From Selaginella moellendorffii (taxonomy: Eukaryota; Plantae; Lycopodiophyta): DNA of 61,380 nucleotides. Position numbers and translations under genes: made by a program. Where the stretch lies: assembly GCF_000143415.4 (NCBI RefSeq), contig NW_003314311.1, positions 225,629-287,008 of the forward strand. Direction: 5' to 3'. This document shows positions 2,723 to 38,897 of this stretch, piece after piece; the stretch's first letter is position 1, and each line of letters starts with the position of its first letter. The notes beneath the pieces are model-generated. The model was not told the DNA's origin, ran no database searches, and worked only from the letters and a program-made list of their open reading frames with translations.

Positions 2723-2822
2723 NNNNNNNNNNNNNNNNNNNNNNNNNNNNNNNNNNNNNNNNNNNNNNNNNNNNNNNNNNNNNNNNNNNNNNNNNNNNNN
2801 NNNNNNNNNNNNNNNNNNNNNN
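2723..2822. other. Assembly gap (100 N)
   Basis: Run of N. Confidence 0.99.
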
Positions 2823-13315: not shown

Positions 13316-14446
13316 AGAGGGGGCGAAAGCGACCCTCCTCTTGTAAAGATACCCCAGTACGCTGTTGTGTGTAGCGTAGTGTAATATCCGCCCAAGTAGC
13401 TATTTATACACGTAGGGCCAAGGGCGGCCAGTTATATAAGCAGGTAGCTTGGGGCAGGGAATATGCCGTGATAGCGGCACAAAGCCTTTCCAGCGTTACG
13501 CCAACAAAGAGGGTATCGATTTCTTTGGTGGCGACAATGTACGGTCCCCCCTAGGCGATTTAAATTGTGGCCATGTGGCGCAAGGATGGGGAGGCCCGTC
13601 ATGGTTGTCCTCTTTTGTCCCCCTTCTTCTCGCTTCTATTGGATTTTGTAAGTGTGTGTAGTTACACTCCAACAATGGCGGAGCTCGCGGAGCTGTGGAG
13701 CTACCTGAGAAGAAGACGATCGCAGCAACAAAGAAAGGCCAAAACAAAAGCGGAGAGAGAGAGAGAGTGAGAAGAAAGTTTGGGGGAAAAAACCAATTTT
13801 GATGGAAGGAATGGATTCTAGTCTCAATGCAAACTAACTACACGAACCTTAGAAACGATAAAAGTCTTCCTATAGCTCTTGCGAGACGTAGAGGTCACTG
13901 GTGCGTTAAACAATTCACGTAGTTCTTTTTCTTCGTGTTTTGATGACCCTTTGATCTTTGCAAGAGCTAACACCTGGATCTCCTTGAACAATCAAATCAC
14001 GAGAAATAGAGGTTAGAATCGAAAGAAGAGTAAAATAAGGTGGAAAACGGGGATAAAAAACTCGACTTTAGTGAATTTACTACGTAGCTTTGTCCCGACT
14101 CGTCACCACCATTACCGAAGAGGAGGCTGCGTCTCTGTCCAGTCGATGCTCTAAGATCCATTTGAGTTTGTCCCTTCTATCATCTGTCCGGAATAAGAGT
14201 GGCCAAGAGATGTGGCTTCCTCCTCTTCTTCTCGCTTCTCCAAAGCTTGAGGAGCTCGCAGCTATAAATTTCCCAAAAACTTCCCCATCGCCACTCCATC
14301 CATTCCCGAGCTCTGCGTTTGTGTTGCGTTGCGTTTTGCGTTCCTGGAAGATATTGACGTAGTTCTTGAGTGGAGATCGTTGTTTTTCTTTTCCTCCGCT
14401 GGTAACAATTGATGTCCTCGCGCTCCACAAGGATTTATGCGAATTC

Positions 14447-15901
14447 ATGGCACTCCAAGTCACCGCTGCTGCTTCAAGCACTGTTTCTTCGGCGCCACTA
14501 GCATTTATCCCTGCTCGTCCCAGCACTTCCAAAGCGGCAATGGACCTTCCATCGTCATCATCTAAAGTTTTCCCTGAGAGCCACAGGTGGCCGCCTAGTG
14601 ACTGTCCCAAAGTCTTCCACAATCAATACATCCGCGGCCTGGAGCTTCCGGTGATCGATCTGGACGAGGACGAGCGTGTCTGCCTCGAAAAGCTGCGCAA
14701 AGCCTGCGAGGAGTGGGGATTTTTCAACGTTGTCAGCCACGGTGTGCCGCAGGATCTCATGAAATCCATGGAGGGATTATCAAAATCGTTTTTTTGCTTG
14801 CCAGTCGAAAGTAAGATCCAAGCTACCGAGGGAAGCTGGAAGTTCCGTCTCTATGAGAGCTTCTCCCGCAAGAAATACACGGCGTGTTCCTGGGTGGAGG
14901 GACTCAATGTACACGACCTGTCCGCCATTCCCCAGATTGCGAGCTGCGCATGGCCGGAACAAAGCACAACTATCAGGTAGCGGAAAAAAAAGGCCTTAAT
15001 TCCGAAGAAAAAACACTTCAAAGATCATGCTTTCTAAAGTTGTATATGGCTGTATGCAGCAAAACTTTCACGGATTACCTGGGAGAGATGGACAAGCTTG
15101 GAAAACGCATACTTCGGCTGCTGGTGCTGAGCCTGGGAGTGAAGGAGTCCACCGCCAGCGATTTGCTGAGCGGCTGTGGATTCACTGGAACTCGCTTCAA
15201 TTACTATCCATCGTGTCCGGAGCCGAGCATGGCTCTCGGCCTTGTTCCTCACACAGATCCAAACTGTGTGACAATTCTCCACCAGGACAGTGTTGGAGGC
15301 CTGCAGATAGCGAGAAAAGGTCAGTGGATAGCGGTAAAGCCAATAGACAATGCCATCGTGATCAACATCGGCGACAGCTTCCAGGTATCAGGATTGTTTT
15401 TTACCTTGTATTGTCTGTTGTTCTTGTTGCTCTGGACTGGATCCAAACTTTCCTTGTTCTTGCTGCTGCTGTTTCCTTTGTTTTTTTTTTTTTTTTTTCA
15501 TTTTTGTTGATTGCTTCCTTATCTCTCCCGGAGTTGAGCTGCTCTAACGATCGATTTTTTTTTTTTTTTTTTCTGTGAATTCCTTGTGATCTTTCCTTTT
15601 TCTCCTCCCTAAGGCCTGGAGCAATTGTAGATATAAAAGTGTGGAGCACCGCGCCGTTGTCAACTCGGATACTCCCCGAGTTTCCATCGGCTACTTCTAC
15701 GGGCCCGTGGCAGAGGACTTGGTGATCCAGGCACCGAGCGAGCTGGTTGACGGGGATCATCCTCTCGTGCACAGGCCTTTCCGCTACATGGACTACATGT
15801 CGTGGAGAACCACCTCAAATCTTTTCGGGAAGAACGCGTTCAACGTCTTTACGAGCCTGGATTTCCCAGGAGCAGCAGCCGCTGCGAGCGAAAAGCCTTA
15901 A
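14447..15901 (+). CDS. 2-oxoglutarate/Fe(II) dioxygenase, gibberellin-oxidase-like (DOXC), 3 exons
   Basis: LPVIDL, ACEEWGFFNVVSHGV, NYYPSCP, HTD, HQDSVGGLQ, NIGDSFQAWSN, EHRAVVN and RVS motifs; exact GA-oxidase subclass not assignable by eye. Confidence 0.9.
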
Positions 15902-18768
15902 AAAGAAAAGGTTTTTTCGTTCTTGCTGCCTGCAAGCAAAGAAAGAAGAGAAGTTTTACGATAGACAGTACGAAAGATGAGCTTACAAACTAAATTTTGT
16001 TTGGTGCTTTCAAGAGAAAGCATCCAGCAGTTTGATCTCCAAAGATGCAGGAAGCTGCAGTTTGCTTTGGAGCCAAAGAAAGAGAGAAAAAAAAAAGAAA
16101 AACCGCCGAACTAGAGCAGAGAGAAAGAACACCAATAAAGACACAGCACAGCACAGCCATGGAACAAAATTCCAAGGACAAAGGAGTGTCTCCTCTTGAA
16201 AAAAAACGTGTGGAAAGAGTACCTCTGTGCGTCTTGTCGTGGCATATTCGCTGCCTGCCAGAGTCGTCGCTATAGCGAAGGCAAAATCCCTTTTGGTACA
16301 GCGATGGATTCGCCTCTACAGACAGCCTGGGACCGAACAGATGCTGATCGCGATCCATTACCTTCCAAAAGCCCTAAAACTGTCAGCCTAAGAGCCCTAA
16401 AAATTCCTTTTGTTGTGGAGAATACTACTTAGAGGCCGCTTGAACGTGAAAAACAATTAAGTAAAAAATCACTCTTTGTATTCCGATCTTGTACAGAAAA
16501 GTCTAGTGTCGTTATATTGTAGATATAGCGAGCCTATATTCGTGTTTTGTCCCTTGATCTCAAGCTGGAGAAGCTCGCAGCTGCTGCATTGAATTGGAGT
16601 ATATTGACGTTGAGAAGAGCAATTGATTTTTTGTTGCTTTCCTTTTCCTCAGTTTGTAAAAAGTGATGTAAGCATTCAATTAAAAAACTGGAGCACAGCT
16701 CTCCATAAGGATTTATGTGAATTAATGGCCCTGCAAGCTTCAAGCACTGTTCTTTGGTGTCACTAATTCCTCTATTCAAGGTTTCTTAATCTTTATCACA
16801 ATGTGGTGATGGATTTTGTATTTCAAAAACAAGAATTGCACTGTCAAAGAGAAGAATCAATAAAAATACAAGGGCAAAAAGACAATTAAAAAATGCCCAT
16901 TTTTAATGCCTTTATTATATCTTTATAATAATTTGCTGCTGTAATGCTTGACTTTCTTTAGTTATTTTTATGTAAATGAAGATAAATTTATTTTGAATAA
17001 ATTAATTTAAAGTTAATATAAAACCCATACAATATTAGAAACCAAAAGTATTCTGCAAAGAAATTGACAATTATTTCAGCTCTTTATGAGAAAATAGAAA
17101 ACAATACATAAAGATTATGCATGCTGCAATCCAAGTTGTGGTGGGGATTCACACTAGGATGTGCTGGTAAAAGTTGGAAAGAGACGTGTGTGATTAGTTT
17201 TTAAAATCAATGAGAGGATAAATTAAGCACAATATGTTTTCAATCACTTTAACACTTCGATAAGTACACCCTCCACAAGCAGTGAAGCTATATTGATTAT
17301 TAGATTTGCTGGAGCTTACAACAACCCAAGCACTAATACACATACATATAATAAAGCACAAAAGGACAAAATTTAAAAAATTGGAGAAGAAAAAATATTA
17401 AGAAAAAAATCCCACGTGAAGCATATATTCTGAAATATTGAAGATTGAGTTATAAAGATTTTTATAATGTCTACATAATCTTGTAACTATAGCGCCTAGA
17501 TTTTAGCCAAGTATGGCTATGGGCTAAATCAATAGTACTCCCCACTTCTTTCTATAAATTTTTGTTTCTTACACGGTTTTGACTTGAATCTTTAGTGGTT
17601 TTTCTGATGATTATTGCAAACCTAAAACCATCTCTAGATAGATCATGAATCTAGTGAAAGCTTGCAAGTGCTAGAATTTTAAACATAATTTGTATTCATG
17701 ATAAAAGAGATTATTAAAAATAAAGCTTGATTACAAATGAATTATAAATGAACCTAAAGGTTTTCTAAAGCAAACCAAAAGCATGACATTTTTTATCTTT
17801 ATAAAACACTTCTTAAGAATCAAAATCTATTTAAGCATTGAGAAAACATTCTTTAAAGTGTTATATATAAAAGTAAGAAGGACTGCAAAAGTATAACATT
17901 ATAAAGTTAATTGATATATTTAATATAACTCAATAAATTTCACTATGATGAAAAAGTATATTATTATTATTACAGAAATTAGTACTACAAAACTTTTCTT
18001 ACTTAATTTAACTTGGATACAAAAATTATCAACAGTTTTTTGCACCTTTAAAATAAGATTAAAGAAAAGTAAATAGTTTATAATATTTAATATCAATTTT
18101 ACCTTTTTTAATAAAATAGTTCAAGATTTTCCTACTTCAATGTACTAAACATTTTTAGAGTTCTTACAACTGTAAAAAGGTAAGCTATTCACTTTTAATT
18201 ACTTTGTTCTCCAGTTCTTAATTCTTAATATGCTTAGAATATCTAAATTTTTCTTTTAAAAAAAAGTATTTAAAAACTTAAATATAATAATTATAGAGTT
18301 TAAAATTTGATTTCTCTAAAATTATATTAATTTCTAATATACCTACATTGACAGAGAGAGAGAGAGAAATTTTATAATTCTCATTCTCAATCTTTGAGTT
18401 GAGTGTTTTTTATCCTTATACTAATTTAGATGTTATGCATGTGCATGAAGTTGAGAATTTGTTTTTGCTTCTTTCTCATTCTCCCCCCTTATCTCATGTT
18501 TTCTTAAGTTTCTTTCATTCTTCTCACTTTTATTCTACTTTATCTTACTGTTTCTACCTTTACTTCTATCACTTTTATTTCCCCATTACTTTCTACTATA
18601 TTTATGTCTTGCTTCTTTATTCCTTTTTTATATTCTTCTGACGATCTTTATGTTGTAGTAATTAACTGACTTAAGAAGGAGTATGCTGACCTTTTTGACT
18701 TTAATTTGTCATCTGTTAAGATTATAACACATCATCCTATTCCAACCAAGGATGTTCATCAAATCAAG

Positions 18769-19988
18769 TGTTGCAAATGTGATTTTGGGTATCGAAAGTT
18801 ATTTGTTAGATAATCCTTTTGAATATTCTTTCTTTACTGCCACAACGGTAGAAGGTTGATATTGCTAAACCCTTTATCAGTCCCTCTTGTGTTAGTAGAG
18901 TTAATTGGGCATTTTGAGTGTATTTAGACTGAATAAACATAAGGACAGAATTCCTACATGCTATTAACTACGCATACTTACCCCGGTAAGGAGTTTTTGT
19001 CTCATTATGTTTTGCATTGGTTATTGTCAAGAACCCTCAAGTATTGAGACTAGTCCTTTAATATCGCTAGATGATAGCTTATTGTGTCTCCCAAACACCC
19101 TCACTATCATGCCCTTTGTGTTAATCTAAATCCCACCATCGGCTCTACGAGCCTACCTTTATGACACTTCTTACTTATGTCTAGGTCTTTTGCCAAGACC
19201 AATATGGTTGTCTCTTATGCCAAATGCTATTTATGAAAAATGTCTAGATTTGAGCATTTGGCATCTCTATGAAATGTAGAGATTGTTTTGAATACAATAG
19301 TGTTCATCCCATATCTAAATTCGTAATCTAGAGACATTTCATATTTAGTAAGTTTCAAGTCTGTCCCAGAGACTAACTCTTGGTGCTAAGGGTGGAAGGG
19401 TGGAAGGGTGGCTAAGGATGAATAAAGCATGTGTTCCTCTAGGGGGGGGTTGTAAGGGGTTCTAAATATATAGTAGGGATAGTGGGTGTGTTGAGCATGG
19501 CCAACCAACTTAAGGTATAGTTTATCTCCCACTTGCGTGCTTGTTTTTATTTTGCATTTGGCTTGAGTCTAAGCCCAAGTTACACACCATGCTAGTGAAT
19601 AGAGTATTTATATCCTACGTTAAGCCACTGGTATGCTAAAATAGCACTATACTTCATTTGGCTTCGTTTTATGTGCTAGTCCTGGCATTGGGATGTTAAA
19701 AGTTCTATGACTGTTCCAAGTCACTCCGTGCTCCTGTCCGTTCGCCCCTTGGGTTGTATGCTCGGGAGTCACTCCGTGCTTCAATTCCGTCACTCTTTAA
19801 CTCCATGCTTGGGAATTTGGCTTTATTCTTTCATTAAGTGGCCTAAGGCTCTAAAGCTTGAGTTCCACTCCACTATTCTTTAGACACGTGGCATATGACA
19901 TATGGCATATAAAGGGTTTAGGTTCTACTTCATGGTTATCCTATGGTAAATCACCATAGGATAAAGGGTGAAAACCACATGTGCTACA
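18769..19988 (+). mobile_element. Solo LTR, family 1, TSD TCAAG
   Basis: TGTTGC...GCTACA flanked by TCAAG at 18764-18768 and 19989-19993; uninterrupted host sequence visible at about 36980. Confidence 0.93.
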
Positions 19989-22582
19989 TCAAGGTTTTTA
20001 TTCAATATCCATCACCAAAGGAGATCAAAATTTTATATGCAAATGTCAAAAAGATGTTAAAGAAGGGTGTTATCTGAAAGTCTCAAAATTTTTAGATATG
20101 TGAACCTCATCTTATGATGATGAAATGTATATATACATTTTTATTCACATTAGTGATGCCATTCAATTTGAATAATGCTTTAGTGACTTTCTAACAAATG
20201 ATAGACAAGGTTCTTTGTGGTATGTTAAAGGTGATTGCTAGCTTCATTGATTATGTCTTAATCCACTCCTAGGGGATGTTGAAAAAATACAACATGATTT
20301 ATATTAAAGACACAATTTATCATAGATACTATATTTCTCATGAAGGTTTACAAGTTAATTATGACAAACTTATAACTGTTTTAAAGTTCTTTATTCCAAA
20401 GTGTGAATGATGTACAATGCTCCCTAAGCAAGGTGTAATATCTCAGTTATTTCATTAATCATACTTCTAACAGTACTACACTATTGCAAGTATTACTAAA
20501 ATTGTTGACATCATCTTTCATCTTATGAATAGGCATTTACAAATCTTAAAGAGTTGTTAATGATTCTTCCAATTTTGGTATATCCTAACTATATTTAATC
20601 TTTCATTTTGTGTGTGGATGTTTTGGATATCAATCTTGAAGTTGTGTTGATGCAAGAGAGTATGAGTGTGCTTGGTCAATGTCATCCCATTGCATACATT
20701 AGTTGTATATTACAACCAATAGAAGTGAAGTACTCTATAATAAAGAAGGAATATTTAGCAATAGTTTGGGGTTTTGAGAAGCTTTATGTATATTTATATG
20801 GTTTTTAGATATTACTAAAAGGTGGTCATGCTCCAATTACTTCATTATTAAAGTGGAAGAACTTAGTTAGTTATATTGCTAAGTGGGTTTTGAAGTTTTT
20901 CAATATATGATTTCAAAGTTGTTCATTGCCAAGAAAGTTTTATAGTTAACATTAACACCCTTTCTCGAGCTTTTTTCCCTTCTTCACTCTTTTATCCTGT
21001 TCCTTACGAGTATGTTATTTTAGCATTAGTGGATTTGTTAGATAAGGATTTCATATTGTGATTGCTATACTTAATGTTTAGTGTCCATAAAGTGCAAAGT
21101 AAGATTTATCTTCTCTTGATGAGGTTCATGACGCTAAAAAATTGAGCTATGGATCCAAAGGCTTTGTGAGGGGTTTGAAAATCTTACATCACTTATGGAT
21201 GACTTGTCGTTTCGACATTTACCTTCTCAATATCATCATAAAGACAAGCTTCTTTATTTTGTAAGAACTAATTCTAATGATCATTTATGGTTGATAGTGC
21301 CTTCAATATTTATTCTATGCTTTCTCTATGCTTATCATAACTCTTTTATAGAATATTGTCATGTGACTAAGAAGTTAAGCAAGTCTTTTTATTAGCCGAA
21401 GATATTATTAGGTATATGCATAGTTGTGTTTGGTGCCAAGCTTATAAAACTCCCCTTATGTTGTAAAAGAAGGGTTGGAATTAATTAGAGTTTTATATTC
21501 ATTTGATTTAGTGGTGTTTGATTTGATGAAGCCTTTTCCACAATCAATTATAAGCAATGAGTATGTCATTATTGCTTTCGACTACTTAATTTGTTGAGTG
21601 AAAGTCAATTCTCTTACTAATGCATTTGTGACTATTATTGGGTACTTCTTCCTTAATCGAATGGTATTTCAACTTTTTTGTTTGGAATGAATTCTTTTAG
21701 ATAATGGTCCCACATTTATGGCTGAGGTATTTCACGTTTTAACATATTGGCTAGGGATATGCCACACTTTCACTAGTGTTTATCATTCACATTGAGATAG
21801 TTTGGTGGAATGATTCATTCAAACCTTCAAAAGGATAATTGCAAAATATATAAATTATCAATATTTAAATTGGGCTGGTTACTTATCATCTCTTTAATAC
21901 ATATATGCTATAGGGTGAGATCATGTTTCCTTTTCTTACTCTGTCCTCGTCAAATGTTGGCTTATTTCCAATGGCACTCTGATCTGCCTTTCTTGCTTAG
22001 CTCCTCAAGGTCTCCCTAGAGAGTTCTATTAGTGTTTCACCATATAAACTCTTATATGGTCATAATCCAATACGGTTAATGGAATTGAGTTTACCTTCAT
22101 GATTGCTATAAGTTGTCGATATTAAATCTTAGAATTAGTATTTAATAAGCATTCTTCCATTGGTTCCAGTGGAATCCATTGAACACTTGGGCCGTGTACA
22201 AGTGGGACAACAATAGCGTTGAAACTCCCATCATCATCCACATATGAAGTACAACGTGGATGACTTTGTGTTAATCTGTTTTCTTAATCTTACTATATAT
22301 AATTTTTTTAAAGGGATCCTTGCAAGTTGGATCATGAGTTTATAAGGTTTAGAATGACATTTAATAAGCCAATCCTCCAAAAATTGTACATATGCAACAG
22401 TTAAAGCATTTTATATAAAAGGATTAAAAACAACTAACACCATTTATAGATCCACTAGTATCTCCTCCTTATATTCCTCTAGATTCTAGCCTATTAACTA
22501 GAAAACCTTGACTTACATTCTTATAAGCTAGATCCTGACCCATTGTTTGGAAAACCTTGACCTACATTATTATAAGTTAGAT

Positions 22583-22738
22583 GTTAATCTCAATCTCAAC
22601 ATGAGGTGTGATTCTCCTAGCCAATTAACAGAGTCGAACCTGAGACCCCTCTAATACCAAATGTAAGTTCCTAAATTTGGACTTTCTAGGAGGTTACCCA
22701 ACTCAATACTATTCAAACCTAAGGATCAAATATCCCAA
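22583..22738 (-). mobile_element. 5S-containing short LTR plus PBS fragment (continues at 33251-33354 beyond the family-1 insertion)
   Basis: Reverse complement of 58007-58275; reads TGGGTAACCTCCTAGAAAGTCC...CTTACA-TTTGGTATTAGAG. Confidence 0.75.
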
Positions 22739-25249
22739 TGTCGTGAATGTGACTTCAGGTATCAAAAGTTACTTATCGGCTAGTCCTTTCGAATATTCTT
22801 TCTTACTATGACAACGTCAGGAGATCGGTATTGCTAAACCCATTATCAGTCTCCGCCTAAGCTAGTTAAGAAACTAGTCTTCGTGTGTGCATTTGACCAA
22901 ATGAGCATAAAGAAGGAATTCCTAAGTGTTTATTTAGTCAAGCATACTTGACCTGGTTAGAGAAACTCGTTCGTTGATTTGCACTTGCTAATGTTGGGAA
23001 CCCCCGCGATATTGAGATTGGTCTCTCAATATTTGTTAAATGATAGCTTACTATGTTTGCCAAACACCCTCGCTATCATGCCTTTTATGTTAGTCTCATA
23101 TAAGTCTCAAATGTTATTTATGGAAAGTGTCCAGATTTGCTCATTTAGCATATCTATGGAATGTAGAGATTGACATGAACACAATGGTGTTCGTCCCGTG
23201 TCCAAATTCGCAATCTAAGGACATTCCATATTTAGTAAGTTTCAAACTTGTTCTAGAGACTAACTCCTGATACTAAGGGAGGCTTGGGGTGAAAGCCCAA
23301 AGTGTGTGGGGGGGGGGGGGTTTCAAATGTATAGTAGGGATAGTGGGTGGGTTGGGCATGGCTGACCAACTTGAGGTATAGTTTAGCTTCCACTTACATG
23401 CTTGTCCTTGTTCTGCGTCCAGCTTGGATTTAAGCCCAAGTTCCACACCATGCTAGTTGGTGGAGTACCCATATTCTTGCGTTAGGCCACTGGTATGCCG
23501 AAATAGCGCTAGACTCCGTTTGGCTTTGTTTTGCATGCTAGTCCTAGCATTGGGATGCTAGTTGCTCTAGGACTATTCCAAGTTGCTCCAGGCTTCTGTC
23601 CCTTTGCTCCTTGGGCTGTATGCTTAGGAACTGCTCCGTGGTCCGATTTCGTCACTCCTTGGCTCCATGCTTGGGAATTTAGCACTATTTCTTCATTCAG
23701 TGGCCCAAGGCCCTAAACCTTGGATTCCACACCACTGTTCTAAGAACACGTGGCATGTGACATATGGCATATAACACGTGGCACATAGAGGGTTTAAGTT
23801 CCGCTTTGTGGTGTTATCTTATAGTAAATCACTATAGGATAAAGGGTAAAAACCACATGTGCTACATTTGGTATTAGAAGATATGTCTCAGTGAGTACTA
23901 TCCAATAAGATTGGGCAACTAGTCTTGTTGCATATGCAGAGATGAATACGATGATCCGAGTGGGTACACGTTTGGGTGCAAAGACTTTGCATTGGTTCCT
24001 TGGGTATGGATTTGGTTGCTTTTTTAATATCGTAATAATGTGAGCTTGCTCTTGGGCTCATAAGAGGGATTGAGTTGGCAACATGGATTTGAGATATACC
24101 ATTTTGCACTTTGAGTTGGTAGGATTAATGTTAGCCTATCGGTGGTTCCATGAGTTGTTCCATGTACCGTGGGTGAAAGTAAATTTTCCTTGGATTTGCT
24201 ATGAGTGGCAAATAGGCTTGTCCGTAGCTGTTTAGCATGGCATTAGCAGATCCTTCTTAGACATGATTACAAGTGGATCAACCAAGATTATAGGGATTAA
24301 TCTATTGGTTCAAGTAATCATTATCATGCTCTCTCATAAATTGTTTTTGGATTAGACTGAAGGCAGTGCAAAAGCAAGCTTGAGGTTTAGTAAAATATGA
24401 GACTGAAAAGAGAGTTATCAGGGACAAAGGATCAAACACGTAAATCATCTTCTCTTATTGGAGAGATAATTTGCAACGAGGTGTTAACTCATTGCTCGTA
24501 TTCACATTATACAACTAAGAGTCTCTACCTTGATGCATGTTGGAAATGATGGTTTTACAAATGGTGAGTTGTGGGATGGATAGCGGTGAAATGCAAAACT
24601 GTTTTGTCTAGGCTTGCTATTGAAGACTTGGATTACAGTGCTCAATTTTTTTCCAAGAACCTTGCTATTACTCTTGGAGTAGCTTGGTGTTGGATTAATT
24701 TTGAGTTTGGTTAAATAGAGAGTGGTATGAGCTTATTTGTGTTGTGAACAAAGTTGGTGGTATTCAATGTTATAAAGCTCTATCGGTGGAATGTGGCATT
24801 TATATTGCATTTTGTCGAATCAAGTTGGCACTTGATATTCATATAAACCTTTGTAGTAGTGATATAGGCATTGCTTGTAGTGTTGCTCAATTGATGATCA
24901 AGTTATTGTGATACTTATATCATATCTATGTGATAGTGAGCAATGTGTTTATAAAGTTGCTTGGTCAAAAGATGATCAACGCCAATGTGGTTGATGGTGA
25001 AGCTAGTCTACTTACACAAAGTAGCATTGAAGTAGTTTTGACTAAGTTCTCGATAATGATCTATGATATGCTAAGCTCAAGTCGGTTCCTTAGTTCTTTG
25101 AGTTTGCCCATTGAGATGTTGGAAAAGGGTTGTAGCATTCATTTGCTATAGTTCATTAGTTGATCTGTTAGCACTTGGAATAGATTGTTGAATGGAGAAG
25201 GTGTGTAGTTAAGGCATTGACATTGCTAGCACTTATGTTAGTGGCATTA

Positions 25250-27147
25250 TGTAGCGCACGTGGTTTTGACCCTTTATCCTATAGTGATTTACCATAGGAT
25301 AACACCACGAAGCGGAACCTAAACCCTCTTTGTGCCACGTGACAGATGCCACATGTCACATGTCACATGCCACGTGTCCATGCCACGTGTCCATAGGAAC
25401 CCGAGGTTCAGGGCCTTGGGCCACTGAACGATAGAACAGTGCCAAACTCCCAAGCATGGAGCCAAGGAGTGTCGAAACCGAACCACGGAGCAACTCCCGA
25501 GCATAAAGCCCAAGGAGCGAAGGGACAGGAGCCCGGAGCGACTTGGAACAGTCCTAGAGTAACTAGCATCCCAATGCCAGGACCAGCACGCAAAACGGAG
25601 CCAAACGGAGTTTGGCGCTATTTCAGCATACCGGTGGCCTAACGCGAGAACATAGGTACTCCACCAGCTAGCATGGAATGGAACTTGGGCTTAGACCCAA
25701 GCCGGACACAGAACAAGGACAGGAACGCAAGCGGGAGCTAGACTATGCCTCAGGTTGGTCGGCCATGCCCGACCTACCCAGAGCAGCAAGGGTGGCTGAC
25801 TCCGTTGGTCATTTCCTTGTCGGCGACGGCCGGAAGGTGTCTGAGCTGATAGCGCATCCACGTTAGACAAAGAGGTTGCTCCCTAACTCATTTAAGTTGG
25901 TGCATTTCTCACATAGTGTGAGTACCGTGAACTTTTTCTGGAGTTGTTTCCTTGGCGGTATTCTAGACTCGAGTATGCATCGACGAGGACGTCGATCTTC
26001 CCAAGGGGGGGAGAGTGTCGCAAATGTGACTTCAGGTATCAAAAGTTACCTGTCGGCTAGTCCTTACGGACACTCTTACCTTACTGCCACGATGGCAGGA
26101 GGTCGGTATTGCTGGTTCCTTTTATCAGCCCCTCTTGTTTAAGTGTTAGTTTACTGGGCTTAACACCTGTACTTAGCCAGATGGACATAAGGTAGGAACT
26201 CCTATGTGTTTCTAGCTGAGCATACTCGGCCTGGCTCTTAGTTCTCTTTTGCTCTGTCTTGCACTGGCTTGACAAGAACCCTCGCGTATTGAGATTGGTC
26301 CCTCAATATCGCCGGATGATAGCTTACCGTGTCTGCCAAACACCCTCGCTATCATGCCCTTTATGTTAGTCTCATTTCGGTCCCAAATGCTATTTATGGA
26401 AAGTGTCTAGATTTGCTTATTTGGTATATCTACGGAATGTAAAGATTGTCCTGAACACAATGGTGTTCGTCCCGTGTCCAAATTCGCAATCTAAAGACAT
26501 TCCATATTTAGTAAGTTTTGAGCTTGTCCCAGAGACTAACTCCTGATACTAAGGGAGGCTTGGGGTGAAAGCCCAAAGCGTGTGTACCTCAAGGGGGGGG
26601 GGGCTGTGGGGGGTTCCAAATGTATAGTAGGGATAGTGGGTAGTTCGGGCATGGCCGACCAACCTGAGGCATAGTCTAGCTCCCGCTTGCATGCCTGTCC
26701 TTGTTCTGCGTCCGGCTTGGGTCTAAGCCCAAGTTCCATTCCATGCTAGCTGGTGGAGTACCCATGTTCTCGTGTTAGGCCACCGGTATGCTGAAATAGC
26801 GCCAAACTCCGTTTGGCTCCGTTTTGCGTGCTGGTCTTGGCATTGGGATGCTGGTTACTCTAGGACTGTTCCAAGTCGCTCCGGGCTCCTGTCCCTTCAC
26901 TCCTTGGGCTTTATGCTCGGGAGTTGCTCCGTGGTTCGGTTCCGACACTCCTTGGCTCCATGCTTGGGAGTTTGGCACTGTTCTATCGTTCAGTGGCCCA
27001 AGGCCCTGAACCTCGGGTTCCTATGGACACGTGGCATGTGACACGTGGCATCTGTCACGTGGCACAAAGAGGGTTTAGGTTCCGCTTCATGGTGTTATCC
27101 TATGGTAAATCACTATAGGATAAAGGGTCAAAACCACGTGCGCTACA
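25250..27147. mobile_element. Fold-back family-1 derivative: inverted half-LTR (25250-25780), 3' internal segment with PPT (25781-26015), full LTR (26016-27147); TSD CATTA
   Basis: Starts TGTAGCGCACG and ends CGTGCGCTACA; CATTA at 25245-25249 and 27148-27152; mirror ORFs 25439..25642(+)/26775..26978(-). Confidence 0.93.
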
Positions 27148-30100
27148 CATTAGCATTATTGTTCGAGTGATGAAGAATTTTCCTTAAAACTTGATTTTCT
27201 ATGTCATTTTTCTTGTTACTCTTTTGGCTTCACATTGGATCTTGAAGGTGGTTAAAGAAGAGTATTAATGCAATGTGGCTATCCAAACATGTGGTCTTCG
27301 TGATCAAGCCTTAGATGTTTATTTTGCATTTTTATGGATGTCAGTGTTGGATATAAAAATATGTGGGTGAGATGTTCAATGCTTAAGCATATTATGGGTC
27401 ATGAGAATTAGTGTTGAAGTGAACCTATATGAAGTGGTAGGTAAGAGGACGTTGGTTGAGTCTTGAAAGTTTGTATTCTTGGACTGAGAGTCATTTTTTC
27501 TTTAAGATAGAAAATTTTTCCACAAGTTTTCTTAGGATTTTCCAATGGCTGATCTGTTGATCACTTTGCTCAAAAACCATTCCGTTTTCATAAGCTAGTA
27601 CAAACTAGTGAAAGGGTTGGAATTAACTTTGGTAAGCTTAGACCTTGGTAGGTAGTTTTTATAATGCAACTCGAAAGGGATACTAATTTTTGGAGCTAAG
27701 GCAATTGAATTGGATAGAGTGTGGAATTGTTATAGAAAAATGGCTATTGCGCTTTTCTGAGAAGGGTGACCCCTGTGCCTTTTTTTTATAGTATTGTGCT
27801 TGGTGGCAAGTTACACTTTGCATTTTGGTAAACTCTATGAGAGTAGTGAGCTCTCACTGATCTTGACTTCGTCTTGGTGGCCCTATGCCTTGACTAAGGA
27901 TGGTGATGTCCAATTTAGTTGTTTGAAGTCGAGGTGTTACCTGTATTATAGCCTTGTTTATGAGGAGGTTGTGTACAAATATGAGTCCATCTCATGGTCT
28001 TCACTTTAGTTTCAGCTAAGTGTTGGTCATGCATAACTAGCCTCTTCAAGGCATACTCAGAATTATTGGTTAGACGTGTTGGTGAGCTTATTACAGTTGA
28101 GTTGAATTCAAATAGTCATTTAGTTCTTGCTTATCCATGAACCTTTATCTCGTATCTGGGATATTATGTTCATGTTAGACAAGTATATAACTTGATGACA
28201 TGAATTTAGTGTTTGGGTCTTATGAAAATAAGTTGAGCGGTGATTGTTAGTTGCTTTGTGACTAGTGATTGCTTATTGACTTCGTCAAGGACTGTTTGAC
28301 ACTTGCTTTGCTCGATGATGATTTAGCAATGATGAGCTTGTTTTATCAGATGGTGTTGCAGAGGATCGTGTCATTAGACTTACATGTTGTTAAACTTTCT
28401 ATGTTGGCATGTTGACTCTACCTTTGTCGATATTATTTAGATATATTTAGTCCGTAGTGTTGAGTCTTGAACATGGTGAATTATTCCTTGAGGAAGTGTT
28501 ATCTGTAATTGAGTTTTGCTAAAGTATTGGTCTCGGATACTGACTAAAGTATCTTTGACTTTGGTTAGTTTGGTTGCTAAAGAGTTTTTGGTGGTGAATC
28601 ACTCTTGCTTTCTTTTAGCTTTGTTTTGGTGTTGATGGCATTGAAGTGATACATTCTCATTGACATTGTTAATGTTGAGATTTGAGTGAAATGAGATGTC
28701 TCTCCGAAAAATTGATGTCAAGTTTCATTAATTTTGATGAAAATAGTGTTAATGATTTGGCTATGGCTTTGAGTTATTAGCATTTATGCAATTGCTAGTT
28801 AACAACTATGTTAGTGTTCAAACGAGTTGAGTGGCAAGTTTGAGTTAGTTGTGTTCTAGACAAGATTATTTAGTAAGGGTTGAGCTTTAACTTTTCCTTG
28901 AAAAGTGATTCAATCATGGACTATGTTAGCTTTATGAGACGAAGAGTTAGTGATCGATATTGAAATGTTTGAATCCTTGTTGGATTTGAGTTTGAATATA
29001 TTAATCATTGATGATTTTTCTTGTGTTTGTTATGAAGTGAATTAGATTCATGGTAGATTATTTAGTGATCATTTGTTAAGCATAGCTTCATTGTGCTTGG
29101 CTTTTGGATTGATGCAAATATGCTCATACTTGTGGATGTGTTGGGGAAGATGTTGTGGGTTATACCATGACTTTTTCTTTATCATTAAAGTTGGTTCATG
29201 CGAGATTTGTGATCATTGTTAGACAAGACATGATTATAGGCTTCTTCAAACTTTTGGTTCTTTAAGTTTTTATGTTCATTATTCCATTTGTTAAAAGTTG
29301 TTAGAAGGGCATTTTAGCTCAATAGCTTTGATGAAGTTAGTATTTGCATCTAGCAATCATTTGTGATGATTGACTATCGTTTTAGATAATTAATTATTCT
29401 TATCGAAGGTTTTGCTTGATTGTTATTAATATATAATGATTCGTTGTTCTTTGGGATGGTGGATATTTTTTTTTATAATAATTATGCATCTCTTTATTGA
29501 TAGGATGATTGATGATCTTTCATGATGGTTAGTTGTTCTTTTTGATGGCTTATGGCTTTTTGCAATACCACATATTCTTTGTGGTTTGTTCTAGATTGGT
29601 CTTTTGGGTTTGAGACATCAGTAGAATGTTGTTAACACTTGCTTAGGCAACTTGAGTTCCTTGGTGTTATTGGCTGGGATCTATTCAGATTGGCTAATAT
29701 GATAGTTGGCATGAATGGGTGTTTGTTAGTCTTATCGCATTTATTTTGTTCTATTGATTATTGCTCGAGTTAGTTCTAATAGGTTGGGATGTTATTTCTT
29801 TTGGATGATACATTTGCAAGCATTGTGCTTGTCAGTCAATGATACTTTGTGTTCTTTGGGTTATCTTTAATAAGTTGTTTGGCATACTGTTTGCCATCTT
29901 CGGTAGTTAAGTTTCATCATTGAGTTTCCTTGAGGATATACTTGCTATTGAATTTTATTGGATAGTGATTCCTATGTTTACCAATTATGATGATCTTGGT
30001 GGTTTCTATACTATAATACTGGTTTATTAGATGATAATTTACTTGGAATACTTTTGTGTTCTAATCTAAGATTTATTCAATGATAATTAAGTCTCTAAGA

Positions 30101-31535
30101 TATCATTGTTTATGACTTTGATATTATCCATCTATTGATCTTTGAGTTTGGGCCAGTATAGGCAGACTGGCTTCGACACTTCATGTGCATGGTGAAATAT
30201 TTAGTCATGGGGTAGCTACTGTCGATTGGTCATATCACTCACCTCTCTATCGATGTTCCTTATTCCATTAAAAGGGCATGACCGTGTAAACAACTCTAAT
30301 TGCCTGTTTTGCAGTAGTCTATCTAAACTTTACTGACGAGTTTAGTTTCTTTGCTCATGAGGGTTGGGGCCTTTGGCTTCTCTCTTTATATCCCTGCAAG
30401 CAGAGGCGTATCACACTTTTGTAAGCTGGGTGACAACCAGAGCATCAAGGGTGGCTAACTCCATTGGTCATTTCCTTTTCAGTGATAGCTAGAAGGTGTT
30501 TGAGTTAGTAGCGCATCCGCGTTAAACAAAGAGGTTGCCTTCTAACACATTTAAGTTGGTGCATTTCTCATATAGTGTGATCATTGTGAACTTTTTCTAG
30601 AGTTGTTTCTTTGCCAATGGTCTAGACTCGAGTGTGCATCGACAAGGACGTCGATTTTCCCGGAAGGGGAGGGGGAGGGGGCGGGGGAGACTATTGCGAA
30701 TATGACTTTGGGTATCGAAAGTTACCTATCAACTAGTCCTTTCGGATATACTTTCCTTACTGCCACAACGGCAGGAGATCGGTATTGCTAGACCCTTTAT
30801 CAATCTTCGCCTAAGCTAGTTGAGAAATTGGTCTTCGCGTGTGCACTTGACCAGATGAGCATAAGGAAGGAATTCCTAAGTGTCTATTTAGTCAAGCATA
30901 CTTGACCTGGTTAGAGAAACTCATTCATTGATATGCACTTGCTAGTGTTGGGAACCCCTATGATATTGAGATTGATCCCTCAATATTTGTTATACGATAA
31001 CTTACCATGTCTGCCAAATACCCTCGCTATCATGCCCTTTGTGTTAGTCTCACTTTAGTCCCAAATGCTATTTATAGAAAGTGTCCAGATTTGCTCATTT
31101 GGCATATTTACAGAATGTAGAGATTGACCTAAACACAATGGTGTTCGTCCCGCGTCCAAATTCGCAATCTAAGGACATTCCATATTTAATAAGTTTCGAT
31201 CTTATCCTAAAGACTAACTCCTAATACTAAAGGAGGCTTGGGGTGAAAGCCCAAAGCATGTGTTCTTCAAAGGGGAAGGGGAAGGGGAAAGGGGGGGGGG
31301 AGGGGGGCGGGGGGTTCCAAACTGTATAGTAGGGATAGTGGGTAGGTCGGGCATGGCTGACTAACCTAAGGCATAGTCTAGCTTCCACTTGTATGCTTGT
31401 CTTTGTTTTGCGTCTAGCTTGGGTCTAAGCCCAAGTTCCACACCATGCTAGCTAGTGGAGTACCCATATTCTTGCATTAGGCCATTATTATGCCAAAATA
31501 GCACCAAACTCTATTTGGCTCCATTTTGCATGTTG

Positions 31536-32951
31536 TGTAAGAGACTAAATTTTCCATTCTACTTTAGTCACTTAACCCCACCTCTAACCATTTGTAGGAG
31601 TCTCACTCACAACCTCCGTAAGTTCTATTTTAGACTTAGGGACTTGCTAGCCCCAAGAATGGCATCCATGCCACTCAACCATTGCATTTGGTCCAAGTGC
31701 TCCACATGTCCGATCCTATAACCGACACCCCAAGGTACCACCGACATATCAGCCTGTTACGCTAAGGCCATGCCCATTCACCTTGGTCACATCAGTGGTC
31801 TAACACTACCTACATCACAATCCAGTCTCTCAAAGACTGAGCCATCCATCCATGAGTGATCATCCCAGATCCACTCCTTAGCATCCTTAGGATTCTCGCA
31901 GACATGGGGAATAGCCTTCCCCAATATCCCTTTTCCAGTCCTCAACAAGTCCCTTTCTGCCCCTGGCCGTATTCGCCAACACTGCCACTAGATCGAGGCC
32001 CACAGGCCCAACCACTAAGTCCCATGGTCCTTTGGGACTTCCTCACCACACAACTGTATCCTTGGTCATTACACCAAAGGACTACTCCTCTTCCTTTCCA
32101 CAATCTGGGCCTTTGGGACAACATTTCAAAACACCGTGGCCTTACCCGAGCCTCATGGGTACTCTCCCTGCTTTCCACTTTTGGATGCTCTAGCCATGGG
32201 CTTAGAGCGAGGTTTCGTTGAGCCACGCCAGGTATCCAAGTAAGTAGTGCCACCCACACTTGGACTAGGAGCATTGACCATTCGATCTCCCAGGGGAACT
32301 AAAGCCAGCTTTTGAACACTTCACCAAGCTACCCCGCTTGTCGGTCCATATTCACTTTCATCTTGGACTTCCCAGTGGTCAACTCATCACCCAACACCTG
32401 GGTACAGCCTTCCTAGGCCAAACTGGCTCCACTGGGCTCCAACCCCCACACTCTCCCTACTATACTTTTGGAACCCCCCGTAGCCCCCCCCCCCCGGGGG
32501 GACGATCGCTTTGGGCTTTCACCCAACAGCCTGTATTAGTATTCAGGCTCGGACTCAGACTCAGTCTCAGTCCCAATTTCAGACTCAGACTCAGTCTCGG
32601 TCTCGGTCTCGGTACCATCTCAGACTCCATTTCGGACTCCATCTTGGGTCCATCTCAGACTCCATCTCGGACTCCATCTCGGGTCCATCTCGGACTCCAT
32701 CTCAGACTCCATCTCGGGTCCATCTCAGACTCCATCTCGGGTCCTCTTGTATCCCTTTTCTAGAGACTCATTTATCACTCACTTCATGTTTGTTCCTTGA
32801 GCACTTCATTGGGAGTTCCACTCCCACTCTCAACCTTTCAAGTCGGAGGTTTTGGTCCAAACGTGTTACGCTTGTTTGGCTTTCGCTTTGGCCACTACCA
32901 CATGGCACCCTTCTGGCTCCACTTTGGGGCCTAGGGATTTTGTGTTTCATA
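31536..32951. mobile_element. Solo LTR, family 2, TSD TGTTG, inserted in the family-1 3' LTR
   Basis: TGTAAG...TTTCATA flanked by TGTTG at 31531-31535 and 32952-32956; host LTR resumes in register. Confidence 0.88.
32545..32745 (+). repeat. 6/12-mer tandem array (CTCGGA/CTCAGA, CTCGGACTCCAT) in family-2 LTR; decayed counterpart at 34630-34920
   Basis: Direct inspection. Confidence 0.9.
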
Positions 32952-33638
32952 TGTTGGTCCTAGCATTGGGATGCTGGTTGCTCTAGGATTATTCCAAGTT
33001 GCTCTGGGCTCCTATCCTTTCGCTCCTTGGGCTGTATGCTAGGGAGTTGCTCCATGGTCTGGTTCTGTCACTCCTTGGCTCCAGTTTGGCACCATTTCTT
33101 TGTTTAGAGGCCCAAGGCCCAGAACCTCGGGTTCCACACCACTGTCCTAAGGACATGTGGCATATAAAAGGTTTAGGTTCCACTTCGTGGTGTTATCTTA
33201 TAGTAAATCATTATAAGATAAAGGGTAAAAACTACATATGCTACACCCAAAACCCTTAATTGATTAGAAAAAAGGGTGCACTCTTATTCATAAGCTCTTT
33301 CCCTTTATATTTAAACCTTTATGAAACATTTTCTTAAATTATTCTCTTTGGTTGCTTCCAAAAGGAGGGGATGATATAAAGACAAAGTGTGACTATAATA
33401 CTATATACTTATGTTAACATAGTAGGATTTTAATAGATATTAGAGTGGTTTCAATTTAGACCATTCACTCTTATATATAAACTATAGTTTTTTGGTTAAT
33501 TGATATAAACATCTCTATATTCTATTTCTATATTCTATACGCTCATATTAGCATAATGGGCTTTTGATAGCCATTGGATTAATTTCAATCCAGACCACTC
33601 ACTTTTATATATAAGCTAGAGTTTTTGGACTAATTGAT

Positions 33639-35148
33639 TGTAACCGATTAAATTTTCTATTCTACTTTAATCTCTTAACCACACTTTTGACTACTTGGGG
33701 CAGTCTCACTCCCAACCTTCATAAGTCTTATTCCCAACTTGAGGACATGCTAGCCTCGTGAATGACATTTATACCACTTAACATTTGTATTTGGTCCAAG
33801 TGCTCCACAAGTCCAATCCCATAATAAACACCCCAAAAGTATCACTAACATATCAATTTGTTACTCTAAGGCCATATCCATTTACCCTTATCTCATTGGT
33901 AGTCCAAGATTACCTATATTATAATCTTATCTCTTAAAGATTGGGCCCTCCATCCATAAGTGGTTATCTTAGAACCACACTTTAACATCCTTATAATGCC
34001 TAAAGACATCGAGAACACCCTCCCCAATGTCCCTTTTTCAGTCCCCACTAAATCCCTCTCCATCCACAGTCGTGCTCACTAACACTACCACTGGATTAAG
34101 CCTCAAAGGCCCTACTATTAAGTCCCATTGACCTCTAGGACTTCCTCACCACATAACCATGCTTATGGTCAATATGCAAGAGCATTGTTCTTTTTCCTTT
34201 CCACAATCTAGGACTTTGGGACAATATTTTGAAATACTGTGGCCCTACACTAATTTCATGGATACTCTCCCACCTTTTGCCCTTAGGTGCCCTAGCCATG
34301 TGGTTAGAGTAAAGTTCTAATGAGCCACATTAAGTATCCTTGTAGGTAGTGCCACTCACACTTGGATTGGGAGTATCAACCATTCAATCTCCCGAAAGAG
34401 TTAGAATCAACTCTTGAACACTTCACTAAGTTACTCTATTTGTCCATTTGTGTTCACTTTACCCTTACCTCCTCAATGGTTATATCATCACCCATCATAT
34501 AGGTATAACCTTCCTTGGTCACACTAACCTTTCCTGGCCAAATTAGTCCATTGAAGTCCTCCTTCTCCTATCTTTTTGGAACTCACCACCTAAGGTCTGG
34601 GAGATGATCACTTTGGGCTTTCACTCTTGGATTCGGACTTGAACTCGGTCTAGCACTTGGACTCGGACTCAAACTCGGTCTCAGTCTTGTTTTTGAACTC
34701 AGACTTGGACTCATACTTGGTCTCCGCACTAGTCTCAATCTCGATCTTGGTCTCGGTCTTGGTTTTGGTCTTGATCTCAGACCCGGACTTGGACTTCATC
34801 TCGAACTCCATCATGGACTCCATTTCGGATTCCTTCTTGGACTTCATCTCAAACTCTATCATTTGGATTCCTTCTTGGACTCCTCAAATTCATTCTCGGA
34901 CTCCTTCTTAGACTTGGTCCTAACACTTCCATGTGTTAATCCTTCTTGTGTCCCTTTATAAAGATTCATTCATCAATTGCTTTGTGCTCATTCCTCAAAC
35001 ACTTTATTTAGAGTTCCACTCCCACTCTTGACTTTCCGGGTTAAAGCTTTTGGTCCCAATGTGTTACACTTATTGGATTTCTATTTCGACCACTGCCATA
35101 TAACACACTTTTGGCTCTACTTTGGGGCTTAGGGACTTGTGTCTCACA
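33639..35148. mobile_element. Solo LTR, family 2, TSD TTGAT, inserted in the gypsy LTR
   Basis: TGTAAC...TCTCACA flanked by TTGAT at 33634-33638 and 35149-35153; colinear with 31536-32951. Confidence 0.9.
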
Positions 35149-37832
35149 TTGATATACACACTTTTGTATTTCATTTCCATATTCTATACACTCATATTGG
35201 TGGAGGTGAGGGGCAATTTTGATTGTCCTTAAGGAGTGTTTGGATTTAGAATTTTGGTTTAGATTTAGCTTTTACATGATCTATATCTCCCTTTTTTTAT
35301 AATTTCTTCTCTTTTACTTTTTCATTTTCATTTATCTTCATATAGAGGAACAACCTTCTCCTCCTTTGACTTTGGAGTAGCAGTTCGTGCAGTTGCTTGA
35401 TGCTATGTAGTTATAGTTGAATAATTAGACTCAATTGATCAAGGCATTCACAGCGCATGGTATAACTCTTTCTGCTCTTAGTGCCAATCCTCGCGTTTGA
35501 CTAGAGTTCTTTCGTGGGAGTCCTAGGGATGATGTGTATAATTGGTTCGATCACTTTACAGTGATTGCCATATATTATTTTTGGGATGATGCTTGGCATT
35601 TGCATGAGTTTCCCACATGTCTCCAAGGGACGGTGTTGCAATGGTATAATGCTTTGAGCATACCCACGCATGAGGATTGGAGCATTCTCCCAAATCTCTT
35701 TAAATACGCATTTGGACATGTTTACAATTCTGATAATGCCTTCCAATAATTGCATCATTTTCATTAAAGGTCATCTAAGTCAATGATGCAATTTAGCATT
35801 CATTTCTGAAGCCTCTTGCTTCTTCTAAAGCCAAATATATCGGAGTGGATCAAGTTAAGAATGTTATGGCCAACACTTCATTAAAATCTTGTAAGATTTA
35901 TGCATGCACTTGCTCCATCCACCCTTGATAATGCTCTTCACTTGGCACAATGTTATGAAACGTTGCCTATTCCACTTCTTGCTGCACATCCTTCAACCCC
36001 ACTTCTTGTAGGAAGTGGTTTTATTCCAATAGAATTTGATGCTATTACTACTCGAGTTCAAGAATAAGAGCAAGGACATGGTTGTAGCCATGATGTCTAC
36101 TGTTGAGCATATGATGAAGTTAATCACACTTATTGGCGTTGCCGATGTTTTCTGAATTAACAACCTCTATTTCTTAAATGAAGACCTTGGTATCAACAAC
36201 GTATTATTGGTGCTACTACTGTAGAAGGTCTAGACACCAAGATGCTCTTAGGAAACAAGGAGTTACACAAGTAGTGGAGAGTCTTTGCATGAATAAGTCA
36301 ATGACCCTTCCATTTTTCTTTTGGGAGTATCATCAAGGGGTTCACTTGGCACCAATTCATCAAGTGTTTACTTCCTAAGCTTATTTTTATAACAAGAGGT
36401 CTTTTATTATTCTCTCCATCTTGGTTGATATAAACTCAAATTTATCCTCTATTTTTCAGTTTGTTGCCACAAGTTATCATTTATATTTGCATCATGTGAT
36501 AGAGCCAGTTTTCATTCTTTATGGCAATGGCTATATACATGCATATGCATGGGATGAGGCAAACATAGTTATGTATGTGTGAGATCTTGAGCTTGAGCTG
36601 CAGTTATTGTGGGTAGTGCCAAATCAAGCTTTTGACTTCATTTTTAATATAAATTGGTTGTGGTGCAATTATGGCAAATATGGCTTTAAAATTTCTCCCC
36701 TTTGTTTTATACTTTTTTATATTTTTTTCATTCTTCTCACTTTTGTTCCTCTTTATCCCTTTGCTTCTACTTCTGCTTCCATCACTTTTTTCTCTCCATT
36801 ACTTCCTTCTATATTTCCATTTTGTTCCTTTATTCCCTTTTTTGATCCCTTTGATGGTCTTTATATTATAGCAGTTGACTAGCTTATAAAGGAATATGCT
36901 GGTCTATTTGAATTTAATCTGTCATCTAGGGATAAAATTGCAACACATCATCCTATTCCAACTGGGGATGCTTGTCCAATCAAGGTTTTTATTTGTCATT
37001 GGTCACCAAAAAAAAACAAAATTTTAGGTGCAAATGTCAAAGAGATGTTAGAAAATGATGTTATTCAAAAGTCATGGAGCATTTAAACTTCATCTTGTCA
37101 CAAAGTCTGATAAGAGTATTTATTTCTGCATCAATTATCACCTGTTAAATGAAGTGACAATCCCAAATGTGTATCCTCCTCCTCACACTACTGATCTCCT
37201 GAATTATCTAAGAAAATGTTGTTGGTTCACCAAGTTAGATCTTGTTTTTGGGTATTGGCCAATGCTAATGGCCGAGGAAAATATTCCCAAAACTACTTTT
37301 TATACACTATTTAATTTATACGAGTTCTTGGTGATGTTATTTAGTTTGAATAATGCTTTAGCAACTTCCTTATAAATGATGGATGAGGTTTTTTGCAATA
37401 TACTAGAGTTGACTATTGACTTCATTGATGATATTTTGATACATTTGGAAGGGACATGGGAGCAATATGTTTGTGATGTTTATAAAGTGTTAGATTGGCT
37501 GCAGGAAGTAGTTTAGAACTAAAGTATTCAAAGTCCCTAAAGACACCACTTATCTTGGGTACTATTTTTTGCATAGAGGTTTACAAGTTGATCTTGATAA
37601 ATTTTTTATTGTTCTTAAGTCCCTTAAAGAGTATGAATGATGTGTAATGGTTCTTAGGCAAAATGCAATATCTCAATTACTTTATTAATAATCTTTTTGA
37701 TTGTATTGCACCATTGCAAGCATTGTTAAAGTTGTCAATGTTGTCTTTCAGCTGATCCATGGATTATGAATGGTTGTTTATGGATCTCAAAAAGCTGTTG
37801 ATGACTCCTCTAGTTTTGGCATATTTTAACTG

Positions 37833-38897
37833 GAGGAAGTATTTAATAGCAGTGATAGACACACTAGCAAAAGCTCTAACTTCCACCCAGTGAATCAAGT
37901 AGTCAGAAGCAATAATGATATACTCATTGCCAGTAATCGACTGTGGAAAAGGCCCCATTAGATCAAACATTACCAACTCAGATGGACGAGAAATTACAAT
38001 TGACTTCAATTATCCTTTCATAACACGAAGGGGAGTATTACGAGATTAGCACCAAATGCAACTACACACATACTAGATAACATCACATTACATTTCCAAC
38101 TAATAGAAAAACCTATACAACTTTTTGATCACAAGACCATATCCTATATACTTGCCTCAAATATGAAAATCATGGTAGATGTGAAGAAAACATGGAATAA
38201 AGATTAAAGACACCACCTACCGTATATGATCATTAGGATCTGTCCTTATAAAATAAAAAAAGTTGTTTTTAAGACAATATTAAGAATGTAAATGCTACAA
38301 TAGCAAATCATTAGTAAATGATGCAAAATTCTTAAATCCATTGTAAAGGCGTCAAATCCATGGCTCAACCTTTTGAGCCTCACAAACCTTATCAAGAGAA
38401 AGGTAAATCTTGCTTCACACCTTATAGATATTAAATATTATTAATGGCACAGAATCCTTGTCCAAAAAATCCATAAATGCTGGAAAAATAGGCTCATCAG
38501 AAATATGAGAAGAGCAAAGAAGGAAGAGGAGCTTAATAAAGGACATCAATATCAACTATAAAACTCTTTAGGCAATGAACAACATTGAAATCATATATCT
38601 AAAGCTTCAAAGCCTACTGAGCAATACAACCACCCAAGTTTTTTAGTTTCAATAATAAACTACAATATAATCACTTTCTAGTAATGTCCAAGAACCATAT
38701 AAATAGGCATGAAGTTGAAACCCCAAACTACTATTAAACACTCCTTTGTTATGGAGTAGTTCACCTCCATTGGTTGAAATATATAGCTGATATATGCAAT
38801 GGGATGGCACTGATTAAACACACTCAAGCTCTTTTGCATCAAAACACTTCCAAGACTGATATCAAAAGTATCTATGCACAAAATGAAAATCAAGTAT
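37833..38897 (-). other. Internal inversion of the RNaseH-integrase segment in gypsy element 2
   Basis: ORFs 38678..38935(-) (CHPIAYISY) and 37764..38009(-) (FDLMGPFP) lie on the opposite strand to the flanking pol; the same segment is on + in element 1. Confidence 0.88.

Follow-up and report, generated by a model that had tools for sequence, protein, structure and literature searches.

An insertion of 1898 bp at positions 25250–27147 of the window (the whole stretch of 61,380 nucleotides that was analysed, from contig NW_003314311.1 of Selaginella moellendorffii) is a piece of an LTR retrotransposon in which the U5 end of the LTR faces outwards on both sides. This element probably derives from an aberrant extrachromosomal cDNA that carried a U5 att end at both of its termini and was inserted into the genome in one integrase step.

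Anatomy of the insertion

The insertion comprises three parts: an inverted partial LTR, a stretch of sense internal sequence that runs into the polypurine tract (PPT), and a complete LTR. Its features, together with the bases directly outside its termini, are as follows.

25245–25249, no strand: left copy of the apparent 5-bp target duplication, CATTA
25250–25780, minus strand: left arm, consisting of LTR positions 622–1132 inverted, with the U5 terminus (TGTAGC) outward
25778–25780, plus strand: CCA microhomology (3 bp), present in both the inverted LTR arm and the internal sequence
25781–26002, plus strand: sense internal sequence of the family, collinear with 30440–30661 of the host element
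26003–26015, plus strand: PPT of 13 nt, adjoining the LTR start
26016–27147, plus strand: complete LTR of 1132 bp, TGTCGC...GCTACA
26618–26641, plus strand: TATA-like block of 24 nt, invariant in 4/4 LTR copies
27028–27063, plus strand: three ACGTGGC (G-box/ABRE-like) motifs forming an array in the right arm
27148–27152, no strand: right copy of the apparent target duplication, CATTA

The outer termini read TGTAGC... (at 25250) and ...GCTACA (ending at 27147), and thus present the U5 end on both sides in the TG...CA form of integrase-mediated LTR insertions. The arms, at 25250–25780 (531 bp) and 26637–27147 (511 bp), are complementary in two ungapped blocks of 402 nt at 98% and 131 nt at 93%, and blastn aligns them at 94% over 531 nt with a 20-nt gap counted. 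Both the alignments and the termini bear out the original prediction, in which the left ~530 bp were the reverse complement of 26637–27147 and each terminus was a U5 att end.

At the sharp junction of 25780/25781, the inverted LTR and the internal sequence share no more than the CCA, and from 25778 onwards the insertion is collinear with the host internal region at 30437–30661 (84% identity). A switch at this CCA had been proposed and stands; the accompanying distance of 235 bp upstream of the PPT does not, as 235 bp runs to the LTR start and includes the 13-nt PPT, with the switch point itself lying approximately 222 bp upstream of the PPT.

The window contains three other LTR copies (18769–19988, 22739–23866, and 30692–33245), with each of which the LTR at 26016–27147 aligns over its full length. 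Of the two direct LTRs, primer binding site (PBS), and PPT of a standard element, the insertion retains the PPT and the 3′ LTR; the 5′ LTR and PBS are absent, their place being taken by the inverted partial LTR. No ORF longer than 89 amino acids was found within 25250–27147. The left-arm counterpart of the ACGTGGC array lies at 25334–25389 and is expanded.

Host element, target site, and age

The insertion sits in the internal region of a larger element of its own family, which spans 22739–33245 and is flanked on both sides by a CCCAA duplication. The relevant features of the host and of a further family member are listed below.

18769–19988, plus strand: solo LTR (A) of the same family, with a TCAAG duplication
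22739–23866, plus strand: host 5′ LTR (B), with CCCAA at 22734–22738
23869–23880: host PBS-like sequence TGGTATTAGAAG, decayed, tRNA-Met-type
30662–30691: host PPT
30692–33245, plus strand: host 3′ LTR (D), with CCCAA at 33246–33250

No long ORFs were found in the host internal region, and its ten open segments gave no credible Pfam match; hence, the family is not assigned to either the Copia or the Gypsy superfamily, and the host may be a gene-less element. The host 3′ LTR is itself interrupted by a 1.4-kb solo LTR of a different family at 31536–32951 (TGTAAG...TTTCATA, with a TGTTG duplication), and a copy of that LTR (70% identical) lies just downstream at 33639–35149. The DNA at 18479–22513, around solo LTR A and upstream of the host, is repeated at approximately 70% identity at 36693–39548, partly in inverted orientation (20591–21652 versus 38897–37832); the LTR family inserted into this older layer of repeats.

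The sequence CATTA is found directly outside both termini of the insertion, at 25245–25249 and 27148–27152, so that the 1.9-kb insertion is bounded by CATTA as originally described. The right flank reads CATTA-G-CATTA, with a further CATTA at 27154–27158, 6 nt downstream; the case for a duplication is therefore built on the precise position of a single 5-mer together with the habit of the family. This habit is evident at two other insertions of the family in the window, solo LTR A (TCAAG) and the host element (CCCAA). The family thus makes 5-bp duplications, as the CATTA pair requires, and the flanking repeat at 25250–27147 is of this family-typical length. From one 5-mer match, expected by chance in about 1 in 1000 cases, we infer a CATTA target duplication, with the natural recurrence of CATTA 6 nt further on counting against it. 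A history of two independent insertions followed by a deletion would require the flanking 5-mers to match by chance (~1 in 1000). A blastn search with both flanks found no paralogous empty site within the window, the only hits being weak matches of the flank 27599–30008 at 2298–3847.

Several measures place the insertion later than its host. The two arms differ by 12 substitutions (10 transitions and 2 transversions) and 20 gap columns, giving a Kimura two-parameter (K2P) distance of 0.024, whereas the host LTR pair has reached 0.152 and distances from the new LTR to the host LTRs are 0.20–0.23; the contrast between 0.152 and 0.024 is in keeping with nesting at a later date. Identity between the left arm and the right LTR of this element is 97.6%, compared with 84% and 76% between the left arm and other copies, and the observed/expected CpG ratio is 0.61–0.71 in the new element against 0.38–0.50 in the other three LTR copies. 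Two proposals of the original prediction are upheld by these figures: nesting within an older element of the same family, and a younger age reflected in better retention of CpG.

The 12 arm differences were polarised with the other LTRs as outgroups, which assigned approximately five derived states to the left arm and six to the right. Each of the 10 transitions is a C-to-T or G-to-A change affecting a CG or CHG/CHH cytosine, which is the pattern of cytosine decay. The arms were thus nearly identical at the start; since the derived states are split about evenly and every transition is of the cytosine-decay type, they were probably fully identical at insertion and then decayed independently. 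Two tandem duplications within the ACGTGGC array, of 13 and 7 nt, make up the 20 extra bases of the left arm, and the right-arm array has the form found in LTRs A and B. Small extra duplications in the G-box array of the left arm had indeed been predicted, and read as compatible with either two different co-packaged RNAs or later slippage; two RNAs are needless, as the arm differences look like post-insertion decay.

Independent decay in both arms also argues against an artefact of assembly, that is, a chimeric or mis-joined inverted repeat, which would have given identical arms. Inverted repeats are prone to mis-assembly, but the 12 differences, the two small duplications, and the decay-type changes in both arms, along with ends that fall at exact element termini with matching flanks, render this explanation extremely improbable.

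A normal two-LTR element that was later altered, either by chromosomal inversion and deletion or by a fold-back replication error, is very unlikely to account for the structure. Replication errors are known to produce fold-back inverted duplications with microhomology junctions, and the element is old enough (K = 0.024) for subsequent events to have taken place. The outer end of the inverted arm, however, matches the U5 terminus and the 5-bp flank to the base, and because of this coincidence a later rearrangement would need a breakpoint exactly at the boundary between element and flank.

Other features of the window were recorded alongside. A 1-kb inverted repeat with 99.5% identity is present at 4994–6011 and 60364–61380, its copies 54 kb apart and the second running off the window end; each copy contains a 191-amino-acid ORF (5353–5928, plus strand, and 60447–61022, minus strand). 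A further inverted repeat of approximately 520 bp (58686–59210/59520–60037; 78% identity) has a 310-bp AT-rich spacer and lies beside a Cassandra-like LTR; neither this repeat nor that at 1–452/860–1298 displays obvious TG...CA ends or a duplication. Large GC-rich open frames at 40139–50077 carry SMG1, FAT, and PI3/PI4-kinase Pfam domains and look like exons of an SMG1-type kinase gene, and an open frame at 14366–14977, in a GC-rich stretch located at 10–16 kb, contains the N-terminal domain of 2-oxoglutarate dioxygenases (DIOX_N).

Proposed formation of a cDNA with two U5 ends

Integration of a U5/U5 cDNA is the preferred origin because it covers, in a single account, the exact termini, matching flanks, near-identical arms, and the lack of a 5′ LTR and PBS. 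Here, we infer that the molecule arose by reverse transcription, which short DNA was its partner, and that integrase took part. As a younger family member replicated, one minus-strand DNA would have been extended past the LTR and PPT and a further ~222 nt beyond. At the 3-bp CCA/TGG microhomology, it would then have joined a second, short minus-strand DNA, which may have been strong-stop DNA or a product paused approximately 15 nt into U3. If each of the two annealed minus-strand 3′ ends then primed extension on the other, a fully double-stranded molecule would result, and tRNA primer removal would define both of its ends, leaving two normal U5 termini. Integrase would subsequently process both CA ends and insert the DNA within the internal part of a decayed, older relative, with duplication of CATTA. 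The product of this insertion is a dead end, unable to replicate again, as it has neither a 5′ LTR nor a PBS and its left arm has no promoter.

The nature of the short partner depends on where the arm ends relative to the start of R. The inner end of the arm (26637) lies 14 nt after the first T of the TATA-like motif. The left arm excludes the TATA-like block, which is invariant in LTR copies that otherwise differ by up to 29%. The usual spacing between a TATA box and the transcription start is approximately 30 nt; with such a spacing, R would start near 26650, and the arm would reach some 10–20 nt into U3. If the start site were unusually close, the arm would correspond exactly to R-U5. The left arm is therefore about the length expected of strong-stop DNA, judging from the position of the TATA-like motif, and may represent strong-stop DNA. 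The position of the inner end beside a conserved TATA-like box, close to the expected R start, counts in favour of the U5/U5 cDNA, and the somewhat greater length of the arm than that of strong-stop DNA under normal TATA spacing counts against it. Also on the opposing side are the 20 extra bases of the left arm, which call for additional slippage, either at reverse transcription or afterwards, and the observation of only a single locus with this structure.

Runs of 11 and 6 G residues at 26593–26613 in the LTR resemble a PPT, and the length of this tract varies among the four LTR copies. The block could form a G-quadruplex; that pausing at such a structure caused the arm to end where it does, with the G-run block 24 nt away, is an idea only.

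The same like-ended DNA could have been made before integration by microhomology-mediated end-joining of two broken linear cDNAs in inverted orientation, with integrase then inserting the product. Linear retroviral cDNA is a substrate for end-joining in the nucleus, where it forms 2-LTR circles, and a sharp junction with 3 bp of microhomology is equally compatible with end-joining and with a template switch; indeed, a template switch and the joining of two broken cDNA fragments would be predicted to leave the same sequence. End-joining is nonetheless rather unlikely. It requires two breaks and an inverted ligation, and the location of the arm's inner end beside the TATA-like box, near the expected R boundary, becomes a coincidence.

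No second copy of the junction at 25780/25781 was found within the window when up to 3 mismatches were allowed (≤3), and scans of metagenomes with the junction and with a conserved 22-mer from the LTR end returned 0 matches each.

Comparison with known systems and hairpin potential

Insertion through two like ends has a precedent in an animal virus: Colicelli and Goff (J Virol 62:633-636) reportedly described, in 1988, a Moloney murine leukemia virus provirus with inverted LTRs that had integrated via two U3 ends. In both cases, the same att end is found at both outer termini, and a like-ended substrate was apparently accepted in vivo. The viral example is, however, U3/U3 and concerns an animal retrovirus in culture, whereas the present insertion is U5/U5 and an ancient, natural insertion of a plant LTR retrotransposon. 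In vitro, retroviral integrases insert pairs of U5/U5 donor DNAs in a concerted manner, two U5 ends being enough to give a duplication of the correct length. Those donors are test-tube substrates, whereas the present insertion would be a natural, genome-fixed product.

DIRS-like elements also have inverted terminal repeats; they encode a tyrosine recombinase and insert without a target duplication, and this class was rejected for the present insertion, which has no coding capacity and possesses a 5-bp flanking repeat. The 5′ inversion of L1 elements by twin priming similarly produces an inverted segment from two priming events joined at microhomology. It differs in that a non-LTR element is copied by target-primed reverse transcription at the chromosome, with no cytoplasmic cDNA inserted by integrase.

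Complex LTR insertions with three LTRs, the middle one shared, and one target duplication are accounted for by a template switch that precedes integration (Sabot and Schulman 2007, PMC1950507; rice survey, bioRxiv 10.1101/452573). They share with 25250–27147 an abnormal LTR structure within a single duplication and a presumed pre-integration error. Their LTRs are direct (LTR-internal-LTR-internal-LTR) with normal U3/U5 ends, whereas here one arm is inverted and the ends are U5/U5; the template-switch model of the Sabot and Schulman type was thus set aside, the extra LTR segment being both inverted and partial.

Ginger and GingerRoot transposons (PMC6839031; PMC2836005) likewise combine inverted termini with short duplications made by an integrase-related enzyme. 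GingerRoot, which is present in Selaginella, has 6-bp duplications, terminal inverted repeats (TIRs) of 100–150 bp, mostly TA...TA ends, and a transposase gene (PMC6839031). Duplications are 6 bp in GingerRoot and Ginger2 and 4 bp in Ginger1, as opposed to 5 bp here, and the insertion has LTR-derived arms of approximately 520 bp (531 and 511), a PPT, and no gene; membership of this group was rejected.

The occurrence of integrase-related DNA transposons in Selaginella (PMC6839031), together with the long inverted ends, TG...CA termini, and 5-bp duplication of the insertion, could point to one copy of a repeatedly mobilised, TIR-like non-autonomous family moved by an integrase-type enzyme. This is highly improbable: both arms clearly come from an ordinary LTR family, the element lacks any means of excision or re-transcription, the window and the metagenome scans contain no second copy of the junction, and the GingerRoot duplications, TIR lengths, and mostly TA ends do not correspond.

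A literature search of partial coverage found no description of a natural U5/U5 insertion of an LTR element, which is weak evidence of novelty; in vivo, like-end integration was found described only for the U3 ends of the mouse retrovirus. The insertion of a U5/U5 cDNA, which remains the favoured origin, suggests that the integrase of a plant LTR element pairs two U5 ends in vivo.

In a predicted RNA fold of the insertion, pairing with the right arm takes up 501 of the 531 left-arm bases, the longest unbroken helix being 135 bp, and the minimum free energy is −1385 kcal/mol versus approximately −640 for shuffled sequences. The potential hairpin of about 500 bp that had been proposed is therefore recovered in the fold. 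A transcript covering both arms would have to start outside the insertion, for example, in the host 5′ LTR, which lies 1.4 kb upstream in the same orientation. Silencing of the family by siRNA derived from such a hairpin is a possibility only.

As a single dead copy, the element has little direct biological weight. It is, however, a preserved record of an error in reverse transcription or in the steps before integration. That like-end integration is a recurrent by-product of LTR-element replication in this genome, and not a one-off event, is unlikely. If frequent, it would be an overlooked source of long inverted repeats, and possibly of hairpin RNA triggers, in retrotransposon-rich DNA, one that annotation pipelines expecting direct LTRs would miss or misclassify. 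If true, it would yield TIR-like inserts able to form hairpins, which, when transcribed from the surrounding element, could seed silencing of their own family, and it would show one way in which LTR retrotransposons could evolve towards integrase-type DNA transposons.
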